This document shows positions 1,258 to 7,803 of a DNA stretch of 64,000 nt, one piece after another (the stretch's first letter is position 1; each line of letters opens with the position of its first letter). The stretch is from Hyaloraphidium curvatum SAG 235-1. Taxonomy: Eukaryota > Fungi > Monoblepharomycota. The notes below the pieces were generated by a model. It ran no database searches, had not been told where the DNA came from, and was given only the letters and a program-made list of their open reading frames with translations. The DNA lies in NCBI GenBank assembly GCA_025558095.1, contig JAIVFI010000012.1:434001-498000 (forward strand), given 5' to 3'. The translations under genes were made by a program, and so were the position numbers.

Positions 1258-1656
1258 ATGGCGTCTCGCGCCAAGCTGAGCACTCATGTTCTTGACACGA
1301 CCCATGGCATTCCGGCTGCGAACATGCGGGTAGATTTGTACTCCGTGTCGACCTCGCAGGACGGATCGCGTTCCCTGAACCACGTCAAGACTGTGCGGAC
1401 AAACTCGGACGGTCGCAACGACGGAGGCCCGCTCCTGTCCGCGGAGGAGCTGCGCGTTGGCGAATTCGAGCTGCATTTCCACGTGGCGGAGTACTTTAGC
1501 GCTTATCGCGCGGCGCACGGGGAACCGGCACCCTCCGCTGGGGTCTCGTTCCTGAACATCGTACCTATCGCTTTCGGAATCCCGGACGCTTCGCAAGGGT
1601 ATCACGTGCCATTGCTGTGTTCGGAATGGTCCTACTCGACCTACCGCGGAAGCTAG
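1258..1656 (+). CDS. uraH: 5-hydroxyisourate hydrolase (transthyretin-like), intronless
   Basis: [20 protein letters not shown] and diagnostic C-terminal YRGS. Confidence 0.95.
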
Positions 1657-3917: not shown

Positions 3918-5248
3918 ATGCCGCCGAAAGCAACTCTCGCTTTCGAGGGCCATGCGGCCTTCCGCCAACGCCTGGTCATGGCGACGCTGACGGGCAGGAC
4001 GGTTCGGATAGACCGGATACGGGCGGACGACGAGGACCAGCCGGGCCTCCGAGGTTGGAGCTGACAGCGAGTCGGCGATTCCTGTTGTGCTGATGGGCGT
4101 GGACAGACTTTGAGGTCAATTTCCTGCGCCTGCTGGAGAAGGTGACGAACGGCACCGCGATTGAAATCAACTACACCGGTCTGTGGGCCCGGTAATGCCG
4201 AAAGAGAAACGCCTTGCTCACGATGAGCTCCTCTTGTACCTCAGGCACCGCGGTGGTCTACCGCCCGGGCGTCATTACCGGCGGCAAGCTGCAGCACGAC
4301 TGCCCGGCGTCCCGGGCCATCGGCTACTTCCTGGAGGCCCTGATCCCCTTGGCCCCGTTCGCAAAGAAGCCGTTCGACATCACGCTGACCGGCGTCACCA
4401 ACGATGCTGTGGACGTTTCTGTGGACCGCATAAGGACGGTGCTGCTGCCCAACCTGCGGCGGCACATGAACCTCGACGCGGACAACGACTCGCTGGAGCT
4501 GCGGATCCTGAAACGGGGGGCACCGCCGTTGGGCGGCGGGGAAGTCAGGTTCGCCTGCCCAGTGTTGCGGTCTCTGAAGCCGGTGCAGTTCACGGAGCCG
4601 GGGAGGATAAAGAGGATCCGGGGCATCGCGTACGCGACAAGGATGTCGCCGCAGATGGCGAATAGGATCGTGGAGGCGAGCCGCGGGAAGCTGACGACTT
4701 TCATTCCGGACGTTTACGTCTACACCGACGTCTACAAGGGGGATGATTCGGGAAGGTGCGAGCCAATGCGGGAATCGGGGCGCACCAGCTTGGCTAAACT
4801 CCTTTCGTCTTGCAGATCCCCGGGATATGGACTGACTCTGGTTGCGGAGAGTACGACGGGGGCTCTTCTTTCCGCGGACTGTGCATTTTCGAAACCTGCG
4901 AAGCAGGAAGGGGACGGCAAGGAGGAGGCGTTGCCCGCCGCGCGGGTTTTCGAGACTCCCGAGGAGTTGGGGGAGTACGTGACGAACCTTTTGCTGGAGG
5001 AGATTGCGCAGGGCGGCTGCGTGGACTCGACGTGCCAGTGGCTCACGCTTCTCCTGATGGCCGCCGGCCCCGAGGACGTGAGCAAGGTCAGGCTGGGGAG
5101 CCTGACGGATTTTAGCGTGCAGTACCTGCGCGACATCCGGACGATCATGAACGTGCGGTTCAAGATCGCGGCCGATCCTGCGAACGGCACTGTGCTGCTC
5201 TCTTGCCTGGGCTCGGGGCTGCTCAACATCTCCAAATCGGCAGTGTAG
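3918..5248 (+). CDS. RCL1: RNA 3'-terminal phosphate cyclase-like rRNA processing protein (spliced)
   Basis: [63 protein letters not shown]. Confidence 0.93.
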
Positions 5249-5279
5249 CTTCGTTCGGTTGGCACCTTTGGCTGCATGA

Positions 5280-5945
5280 AAAATAAAAGGAACGAGAAGA
5301 TCTTCTCGCCCGTCCGATCCGCAGAGCAGGAGGCCCGAGGCTCCCCCGCGGCCTCCGGACGGCCTAGGGGCCGGACCGGCGCTACCTCCCCGGACTCGGA
5401 CGCGCGACGACACCGACCACAGGGAGGGCAAGCACGAAGCTTTGAGCGCCGCGGACCGCGAGGCCCGCTTCGCTTCCCCCCTGCCGCGTACGGCCGCGGC
5501 CCTCGCCCGGCGAGACGCCGGTCCCCTCTCGGTGCCCCGTCCTCGGCCGCCGGAGCGGACGGCGACCGTGTCCGCAGCAGTCAGGCAAGCGCAAACCCGG
5601 AGGCGGGATCCGCAGGCTGTACGCCTTTGGTTTTGGTTCGCGCGGCGACGCGTCGCCGGCGGGCGGTGGAAAGGCCTGTCCCAAAGCACCGCCCCGGCGG
5701 GGCGCCGCGGCAGCCCCGCCGTCCCGAGGTCGCCCGAGGGCGCCTTCAGCCTCGCACTTAGGGTTAGTTTCTGCCGGGCGGGCGGCGGGCGCGGTGGCCG
5801 CGGACGCATCCGCCGCCGACCCGCCGCCCGCCCGGTGGAAAAGCCATGGGGCGAGCGGGCGCCTCCGGGCACTGGCTGCCGGGGTTGCCGGCGGGCGGAC
5901 GGGAATCCGACCGCCCTCTCTGCGCGGGCCTGCTGTGCGGACCGG
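5280..5945 (-). ncRNA. Putative telomerase RNA (TER/TR); ends approximate
   Basis: Template CUAACCCUAA (+5758-5767 TTAGGGTTAG); 16-bp hairpin 6 nt upstream (5774-5789/5820-5835); pseudoknot 5623-5709; core-enclosing helix 5596-5605/5860-5869; CR4/5 junction 5419-5484 with P6.1 AAGC-UUCGU-GCUU; outer helix 5318-5330/5929-5941. Confidence 0.85.
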
Positions 5946-6157
5946 GCGCCGGCCCCGCGGGGGGCGGCAATCCGCGTGGCGGCCGCGTGCGGCACGCTCT
6001 TACCGATTTACCGGCGCGTCCCGGGCCCGCCCTCTTGGCGCTCTCGCGGTGGACGCCCGCGTCGAAAGCACATTCGACGAGTGGGGGCGGCCGTCCCATC
6101 CATCATTCCTCCCTTGCCCGACGGGCAAATGTACGGTCTATTGCATCAGCCCCCGTC

Positions 6158-7644
6158 TCATCTCAGGGTGCCCTGGAACACCGCATCGCGTGCGGCGTAC
6201 TTTGGCAGCGTGACCGCCGCGGCCTCGATCACGCTGCGGTCCGAGAAGAGCTGGTGCGGCTCGGCCCTCGCCGCCAGCGCGGCCAGGTTCCGCTCCAGGG
6301 TTTTCGCTGGTGTGGCAGGTGAGCTCGATTCGCACGGAAGGCGTGTAACGCGACGCACCGGCCTCGACCTCCTCCTTGGACGGCGCCGCGTCGGCCGACT
6401 TCGCCAGCCTCGCCGTCTGCAGCGCGTGCAGCTTTCTGAGCAACACCGCGTTCTCCTCCACCAGCCTCGTGCCCTCGTCCTCCACGTCCCCGGCCATCTC
6501 CCGCAGCAAGTCGATGTCCACGCCTTCGCGCGCCCAGGCCTCCTTGTCCGACGGGTCCGGCAGGGCCTCGTGGCCATTGGCCGTGGGCTTGACGCCGTTC
6601 GGCACCGTCGACGGGGCGGGTGCGGCGGCGACCGGAGGCACCGCTTCGCCAGTCGGGGCTGCCGGGGCCGCCGGGGTCGCGGCGGCCTTTTTCGCCGCGT
6701 TGGCGCCCTTGGACGCGTCGCCGTCGCGTTCCCTCCTCCGCGGCTTGGTAAAAAGGCGCGCCTCGTGCGAGTTGGCGTCGGAGCCCTCGTAATCCATACT
6801 GGGCGCGAAGGAGGAAAACTCGCCATAGTCGAGGTAGGCGACTGCAAGTTGCATTCAGCCGTATGACTGGCAAGCGCCGTTCCGAACGACTTACCGGGGT
6901 GCAGAGGTTTCGGTTTCCACGGCGGAGGGGGCAGCTCGAATTTCTCGGCGTCGGCGCCGAGTGTGAGCTCGCCAGAGGGGTCGTTGGTCGGGACCAGGCC
7001 CGACGGAGTGGGGATTACGGTGCCGACCTTGACGTGCGGGGCTGCGTCGGAGGGTGGGTCAGTTGCTGTCGCTTTGAAGCCCACGACGCGCCGACCCACG
7101 GAGGGAGGAGATATCCGAGGCCGTTATCGGCTTCCTGGCTGCCCCGGTGTACTGAATGGAGCCGTCGCTGTTTATGAGAAAGAGGTACTGGGACTTTTGG
7201 ACCGTCCACGGCCCCTCCGGTTCCTCGCCTGCGGGAAAAGTCAGCCGAGGCCGCCGAGCAAGCAGAGAGCTGCCTGCCTTTGTCGGCGAACGGCGACGAG
7301 GGCGGCGAGCCGGCCCGTTCGCGGTGCAGCCGGTAGTAGTTTATCAGCGAGGTCCCGGCGGCGAGCAAGCGCTGCGCCTTCTCGCGGTTCGGCGAGCCGC
7401 GGGGCTGGGCATTGAACACGGCGGCGTGCAGCGCGCGGAGGGCGCGCTCGAGGTCGTCCAGCGAGGCGAGCGAGGCCTCCTTGATCGACGACAGCCGCTG
7501 GGCCGCCGACACCGAGCCCTTGAGCGGCAGCGACTCGTCGACGCGGTGCAGCACGCGCAGCACGGCGGCGATCTCGTCGGCGTCGGGCCGCTCGCGGTCG
7601 GGCTGCTCGTCGCGCCGCCGCTTGCGGACCTGGCGGGAGGACAT
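6158..7644 (-). CDS. Rsc58/BRD7-BRD9-like chromatin-remodelling subunit (spliced, no bromodomain seen)
   Basis: Coherent exon chain; YLDYGEFSSFAPSMD resembles the LDYGPFSSFAP motif of the Rsc58/BRD7/9 group. Confidence 0.55.
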
Positions 7645-7803
7645 TGTGGTTTGAACGTCGTCTGGTCGTCTGTATCAAAAACTCGCGAGCCTAGAGCCAG
7701 GCTGACATCGATGCACCACCACGATTCTAGCACTAGCACAACCGCGTCCCTGACGACCACACTCTTGCGCGCTTGACGCCGCCCTCCGAGGACACGCGTC
7801 GCA

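Follow-up and report, generated by a model that had tools for sequence, protein, structure and literature searches.

The minus strand of positions ~5945 to 5280 of the window, by which we mean the whole 64,000-nucleotide stretch of Hyaloraphidium curvatum DNA analyzed here, is very probably the telomerase RNA gene of this organism. A sequence-only reading of this DNA had made the same proposal, which is now sustained by a footprint at the chromosome ends: bases of the template flank are present at de novo telomere junctions, and the flank sequence is exclusive to this locus. Known fungal telomerase RNAs come from Ascomycota and Basidiomycota. Our literature search found none from Chytridiomycota or other early-diverging fungal phyla, in agreement with the earlier remark that no such RNA had been described, and, within the literature searched, the H. 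curvatum gene would give early-diverging fungi their first telomerase RNA.

Location, copy number, and transcription of the candidate gene

The proposed RNA (5279 to 5945, minus strand; ~0.65 to 0.7 kb, with both ends approximate) lies in a GC-rich gap (0.75 to 0.81) between the 3' ends of two converging genes. These are indeed the neighbors named in the sequence-only reading, RCL1 on the plus strand, with its stop at 5248, and a DUF3512/Rsc58-like open reading frame (ORF) on the minus strand. The last part of RCL1 (4214 to 5248, plus strand) has the Pfam domains RTC and RTC_insert, is covered by spliced RNA contigs, and is 94% identical to an H. curvatum protein; protein searches used both the unspliced ORF 4214 to 5245, in which a 60-nucleotide in-frame intron is read through, and the single exon 4814 to 5245. 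The Rsc58-like gene (6138 to 7649, minus strand) is upstream of the candidate, has a weak match to DUF3512 as in Rsc58/BRD7-type proteins, and is covered by an RNA contig at 6369 to 7649. Its ORF stops at 6138, its GC3/codon signal fades below ~6330, and its contig reaches no lower than 6369; the gene itself probably ends upstream of the ORF stop, or it has an unmodelled intron. Codon periodicity is absent from the gap, where no codon position stands out (GC3 is 0.80 to 0.88 in the RCL1 exons).

A DNA search of the genome returned the candidate region as a single copy, as had been anticipated for a telomerase RNA gene, and found no paralogue. The genome also has a TERT gene, with the TERT RNA-binding domain (PF12009) encoded at C15:409344-409646 (contigs of the assembly are designated C2, C3, and so on). 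Just upstream of the candidate, a short dispersed repeat of 48 nucleotides (window positions 6020 to 6067) is 96% identical to C7:455748-455795. Contigs of 151 nucleotides that are identical or near-identical to window positions 5837 to 5987 and 6031 to 6181 are present in a soil metagenome run from 2024, so the species or a strain of it occurs in that soil sample.

One H. curvatum sequencing run holds spliced contigs and is therefore RNA. Within the gap, contigs of this run lie at 5760 to 5943 only, at a depth of ~16 compared with 170 to 400 for the flanking genes; none of them, strand-blind and with uninformative gaps as they are, lies in 5944 to 6311 or 5392 to 5759. The RCL1 mRNA contig, from the opposite strand, ends at 5264, and no contig bridges the upstream gene to 5943. 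A separate transcript of low abundance, starting at or below 5943, would agree with this pattern. At the other end, the palindrome GAGAAGAUCUUCUC (5306 to 5293) and a following U4-A-U5 tract (5288 to 5279) may together serve as a 3' end zone (5279 to 5306, minus strand). By inspection, there is no H/ACA box domain and no ACA 3 nucleotides from a plausible end; nor is there a clear Sm site with a 5' splice site, the U4-A-U5 tract being followed by C, not G, and by no splice-site-like sequence.

Predicted fold of the candidate RNA

The 651-nucleotide minus strand has a minimum free energy (MFE) of -418.8 kcal/mol, with a z score of -5.95 (plus strand, z = -4.0). Folding reproduced the domain order that had been read from the sequence, namely, boundary hairpin, template, a possible pseudoknot, closing helix, and CR4/5. 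The template CUAACCCUAA (5758 to 5767, minus strand), which corresponds to 1.67 copies of the TTAGGG complement, is unpaired in the MFE structure; as the earlier reading stated, CTAACCCTAA is present on the minus strand at 5767 to 5758, and it is unique in the window. The proposed boundary hairpin (5768 to 5841, minus strand) is likewise predicted, with 17 bp between 5835-5819 and 5790-5774 extended by the 4-bp helix UUUC/GAAA, and it abuts the template at 5768, next to C5767 (local z = -6.4). The product expected from read-through past this boundary, GGTTAGTTTCTG, was found nowhere else in the genome.

The 10-bp closing helix of the sequence-only reading, in which CCCGGAGGCG (5869 to 5860) is the perfect complement of CGCCUCCGGG (5605 to 5596), forms in the MFE structure. 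As a predicted element (5595 to 5870, minus strand; 5870-5861 with 5604-5595), the core-closing helix appears in the MFE structure as well as in the centroid structure and encloses the template and the pseudoknot domain. The outer helix of the same reading (5318 to 5941, minus strand; 5941-5929 with 5330-5318) fared less well: 12 of its 13 pairs are available by sequence, but the MFE structure does not choose it, and we list it as an alternative that would join the 5' and 3' regions. By our estimate, ~3 chance helices of 10 bp are expected per 650 nucleotides of sequence with 78% GC.

Within the core, a possible H-type pseudoknot spans 5623 to 5694 (minus strand). Its stem 1 (5694-5687 with 5668-5661) is in the MFE structure, and its candidate stem 2, found by inspection only, would pair GCCUUU (5675 to 5670) with AAAGGC (5628 to 5623). 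The loop of stem 1 begins with CUUU, with a U run at 5685 to 5683, and the A-rich strand at 5638 to 5626 is left unpaired in the MFE structure. On inspection, this putative pseudoknot could have the vertebrate topology, with three U-A pairs possibly available for triples.

The CR4/5 junction, for which (as for the pseudoknot) the earlier reading gave no coordinates, is placed here at a three-way junction at 5484 to 5419 (minus strand) formed by a 9-bp P5 (5484-5476 with 5427-5419), P6 (5474 to 5445), and P6.1 (5442 to 5430). When the junction was folded alone, the local MFE structure made up 0.45 of the ensemble (z = -3.25). P6.1 is defined by a 4-bp stem and a 5-nucleotide NUNGN loop (PMC3592445); the candidate P6.1, AAGC-UUCGU-GCUU, has a 4-bp stem, and its loop UUCGU conforms to this consensus (PMC3592445). 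A scanner for strict junctions (P5 of at least 8 bp) found 5 in 351 kb including the candidate, a background of 0.011/kb; when G-U pairs were allowed in P6.1, it matched everywhere and was useless for ranking loci. With the minus-strand z score of -5.95 and a three-way junction found ~0.011 times per kb in background, the structural context of the template exceeds chance.

Could the locus nevertheless have nothing to do with telomerase, the motif being a chance match in a structured GC-rich spacer formed by the converging 3' untranslated regions of the two genes? GC-rich sequence forms many chance helices, the plus strand also beats its shuffles (z = -4.0), and RNA coverage is thin. Moreover, CTAACCCTAA alone is not significant genome-wide, being no commoner than its reversed control (about a dozen interstitial copies versus 27). 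However, this explanation leaves the P6.1-type junction unaccounted for, and the contigs do not fit a spacer of 3' untranslated regions, since that of the RCL1 mRNA ends at 5264 and none links the upstream gene to 5943. It also has no answer to the in-register flank match of the bases added at several independent healed ends, described below, and we consider it very improbable.

Repeat units of the H. curvatum telomeres

The sequence-only reading had expected (TTAGGG)n chromosome ends and had itself counted non-TTAGGG telomeres as evidence against its proposal. This expectation failed: the 33 assembled ends that we inspected carry (TTAGG)n, and the assembly (31.9 Mb) has no run of four tandem TTAGGG units. 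At contig 3' ends, (TTAGG)6 gave 703 forward and 0 reverse matches. The 31 terminal arrays that were parsed are 117 to 176 nucleotides long and comprise 822 TTAGG, 34 TTAGGG, 10 TTTAGG, and 6 TTTAGGG units, with TTAGG accounting for 95% of all units. Units of the TTAGGG type open the array at 11 of the 31 ends but make up only ~4% overall; several arrays are pure TTAGG from unit one. An assembly artefact is an unlikely source of the TTAGG repeats, given that RNA and DNA short-read contigs match the assembly gap-free over 5.5 kb and that arrays of pure TTAGG from the first unit exist.

The template thus holds 1.67 copies of TTAGGG versus a bulk repeat of TTAGG, and faithful cyclic copying of CUAACCCUAA would give TTAGGG. 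G runs longer than 3 are almost absent (2 of ~900 units), and T runs reach 4, a pattern that a three-C template fits better than stuttering on two Cs. There may be two template alleles, CCC and CC, but these would leave the concentration of G3 in the first units unexplained.

Every terminal array is at the 3' end of its contig. Among the first 20 contigs, no 5' end has CCTAA, and some 5' ends begin within coding sequence of the gypsy-like type; the contigs may have been oriented deliberately, or they may be chromosome arms that were broken in repeats. Contig 25 has an internal (TTAGG)n array of ~125 nucleotides at a distance of 16.7 kb from its start (C25:15200-18500, ~positions 1480 to 1600, plus strand), which points to a former chromosome end, a fusion, or a misjoin. 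On C10 (809500-812700), C20 (707470-707850), and C17 (728160-728370), telomere-like repeats are clustered in both orientations a few kilobases from contig ends that have no terminal array; at C10, inverted copies of a subtelomeric repeat lie on either side of the cluster. The clusters on these three contigs might represent palindromic ends, or else artefacts of fold-back assembly.

Template flank sequence at healed chromosome ends

Directly 3' of the template, the RNA would continue with GUGCGAGG (5750 to 5757, minus strand), a flank that we propose aligns broken DNA ends and whose GUG would be copied to CAC in DNA. A DNA copy of RNA 5767 to 5750 reads CCTCGCAC-TTAGGG-TTAG. In the genome, CCCTAAGTGCGAG occurs nowhere else, CC(C)UAAGUGCGAGG occurs at this locus only, and CTAAGTGCGAG has a single further occurrence, which is preceded by ACAT and is not telomere-like.

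The flank recurs at one subtelomeric interstitial site. At C16:738360, ACCTAACCTAACCTAA, which has three CCTAA units, is followed by GTGCGA, six bases that likewise come directly after the template in the window. Beyond GTGCGA by 25 bases (C16:736800-739800, positions 1561 to 1627), an 18/19 match to RNA 5885 to 5867 lies in the opposite orientation; this RNA-sense, upstream match is weak taken alone (p ~0.025). The site had been considered as an alternative telomerase RNA gene and is now read as a telomerase product. Because its flank is shared with the template, terminal junctions were tested for copies of the flank.

The junction of the C3 telomere reads CCTCGCAC, T, TTAGGG, and (TTAGG)28, and that of C35 reads TCGCAC and then TTAGGG. 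TCGCAC is the DNA copy of RNA 5757 to 5752, and it stands directly before the repeats at these two telomeres and at the interstitial C16 site. With a background of 2.4e-4 per position (351 kb), it was expected 0.007 times in the 31 junctions and was seen twice, and it is the only 6-mer suffix common to two junctions. Subtelomeric blocks are common to several ends (the C3 end, C10:809-813 kb, C16:740 kb, the C35 end, and the C12 end) at 78 to 100% identity, which allows the healed breakpoints to be reconstructed.

At the C3 end, the unbroken paralogue on C10 (94% identical) has GGCTCCTCG followed by GCCGCGG, and the healed end has the same sequence followed by CAC and TTTAGGG. The comparison indicates that the DNA broke after CCTCG, which would have paired with RNA CGAGG (5754 to 5750), and that CAC was newly made as directed by GUG (5757 to 5755). 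At the C35 end, GGCGTCG continues into CCGCCCC in the unbroken paralogue on C12 (100% identical) and into CAC and TTAGGG at the healed end, pointing to a break after GTCG(C) and the addition of (C)AC after a 3- to 4-nucleotide microhomology. The C22 end differs in that GTTCAC, followed by CCCATG in the unbroken paralogue on C26 (100% identical), is followed directly by TTAGG; here, CAC appears to have been present already and to have served as the seed. The de novo CAC and (C)AC thus adjoin microhomologies of 5 nucleotides (C3) and 3 to 4 nucleotides (C35), in register with the candidate RNA. In addition, 17 of the 31 junctions have a C immediately before the repeats, as pairing with G5757 predicts. 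At C3 and C35, GGG directly follows the flank copy, from which we conclude that CCC is read on the first pass.

Taken together, flank-templated bases at healed ends and a flank that is unique in the genome imply that the RNA copied by telomerase has the sequence of this locus. By this indirect route, through genomic footprints, the candidate RNA appears to be the one that telomerase copies in vivo. The opposite relation, in which the locus is itself a telomerase product (a copied flank and TTAGGGTTAG inserted at an old break) and the true RNA is encoded elsewhere, would have a parallel in the interstitial telomere-like sites that exist in this genome, one of which (C16:738360) carries the same 6-nucleotide flank. 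We judge it highly unlikely, because the source RNA would need CC(C)UAAGUGCGAGG, which the genome has at this locus only, because the 8-nucleotide flank agreement at the C3 end continues into the locus's own sequence, and because the boundary hairpin, the closing helix, and the P6.1 junction would all have to be coincidence.

Other template-like loci, databases, and relatives

We scanned the genome for TTAGG-type templates, defined as (CCTAA)n 10-mers in all five phases preceded by a non-repeat base, and examined ~35 interstitial loci of this type as well as eight other interstitial CTAACCCTAA loci. No RNA gene stood out among the ~35 TTAGG-type loci, several of which were repeat families, and the GTGCGA flank was absent from the eight other CTAACCCTAA loci. 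Across the ~45 other interstitial template-like loci of both repeat types, the flank was absent except at the C16 site. A site with mixed five- and six-base units (C2:661713-661728) was rejected as an alternative gene, since it lies antisense within a gypsy-like frame.

These results bear on the repeat mismatch. If the candidate were a former or second telomerase RNA used in healing only, with the TTAGG arrays made by another RNA or by inter-telomere recombination, one would understand why the template encodes TTAGGG when 95% of the units are TTAGG and why TTAGGG is concentrated in the first units. However, the DNA search found no paralogue, no RNA gene was seen among the ~35 interstitial loci with a 10-nucleotide TTAGG-type template, and the uniform arrays of 117 to 176 nucleotides are as expected under telomerase control. 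We give this division of labor little credence.

Searches with the Rfam telomerase families (vertebrate, ciliate, Saccharomyces, ascomycete, and plant) gave no match at E values up to 10 over 4800 to 6500 and none at the gathering score in the whole window, a result that is expected for an RNA evolving this fast. The nearest relatives of RCL1 beyond H. curvatum are at most 58% identical. A pattern scan of metagenome DNA gave no match, and a scan with the RCL1 exon found only relatives of at most 50% identity. In Gonapodya and Polychytrium, the surroundings of RCL1 lack a template motif. These searches thus yielded no relative near enough for a covariation analysis of the predicted helices.

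Discussion

How might an RNA with a TTAGGG-type template maintain TTAGG telomeres? We propose that copying is limited on the 5' side by the stable hairpin with its end at 5768, that CUAACCCUAA (5767 to 5758) templates the repeats, and that the adjoining GUGCGAGG (5757 to 5750) extends the alignment region. The closing helix and the pseudoknot, together with the CR4/5-type junction and its P6.1, would form the two TERT-binding domains. In healing, as reconstructed from the junction sequences, the 3' end of the broken DNA pairs with CGAGG, CGA, or GUG of the flank, and the remaining flank bases are copied, yielding CAC, followed by the template, often giving TTAGGG. After this first pass, translocation may place the 3' G of the DNA opposite the middle C, and a stroke of five bases, possibly fixed and with one C bulging out, would add only GTTAG per cycle and produce the TTAGG bulk. 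We offer the composite picture only tentatively, and it may well prove wrong in part: a vertebrate-like chytrid RNA of ~0.65 kb with a TTAGGG-type template, in which a five-base stroke that leaves one C uncopied gives TTAGG at steady state and all three Cs are read only on the flank-primed first pass.

The candidate resembles vertebrate TERC (Rfam Telomerase-vert) in several respects. Its template CUAACCCUAA is one base shorter than the human one, and its predicted elements come in the same order, with the template followed by a possible pseudoknot, whose loop is U-rich and which has an A-rich strand, then by a closing helix and a CR4/5 three-way junction. Both have a P6.1 of 4 bp with a 5-nucleotide NUNGN loop, and both are compact, with lengths of hundreds of bases. 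Unlike vertebrate TERC, the candidate has no Rfam match and, on inspection, no visible 3' domain of the H/ACA type (hairpin-hinge-hairpin-ACA). Its boundary element is a local hairpin abutting the template, whereas that of vertebrate TERC is the long-range P1b helix. The telomere product also differs, being mainly TTAGG in H. curvatum.

The telomerase RNAs of Pezizomycotina and fission yeast are ~1.2 to 2.4 kb long, roughly two to four times longer than the candidate. They have an Sm site and undergo spliceosomal 3' cleavage, in place of which the candidate shows only its U4-A-U5-C tract. The Neurospora crassa TER and Schizosaccharomyces pombe TER1 have a boundary element, helices that enclose the core, and a P6/P6.1 junction resembling that of vertebrates, all of which are predicted for the candidate, as well as a pseudoknot, which the candidate may share (PMC3592445), and filamentous fungi mostly have TTAGGG-type templates (PMC3592445). 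A non-ascomycete comparison is provided by the telomerase RNA of Ustilago maydis (PMC9564094), which has T/PK and CR4/5 domains and, like the candidate, follows a protein-coding gene that has the same orientation (PMC9564094). In H. curvatum, the contig-free segment at 5944 to 6311 gives no support for a precursor shared with the upstream gene and is not decisive on this point.

The nearest precedent for the healed-end readout would, by analogy, be the vertebrate TERC-ITS, in which telomeric repeats lie beside short stretches reverse-transcribed from telomerase RNA at breaks (PMC8537989). The C16:738360 site resembles these elements, as a template-adjacent copy with an upstream RNA-sense match is the commonest vertebrate layout (PMC8537989). 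In contrast to TERC-ITS, the clearest H. curvatum cases are terminal healed telomeres, and the copied stretch extends 2 to 3 bases past the microhomology.

Healed ends are a natural readout of the template-adjacent bases and offer a cheap confirmation of candidate telomerase RNAs for which there are no relatives or RNA data. A six-base template serving five-base telomeres, if real, bears on how telomerase sets the repeat register, and the stroke model, if true, would be a new route to an altered telomere repeat length with no change of the template. If our identification is true, the candidate RNA would supply a model with which other early fungal lineages can be searched, and a chytrid RNA that is compact and combines a near-human template with a canonical P6.1 and a triple-helix-type pseudoknot would support a vertebrate-like core in the ancestral opisthokont telomerase RNA.
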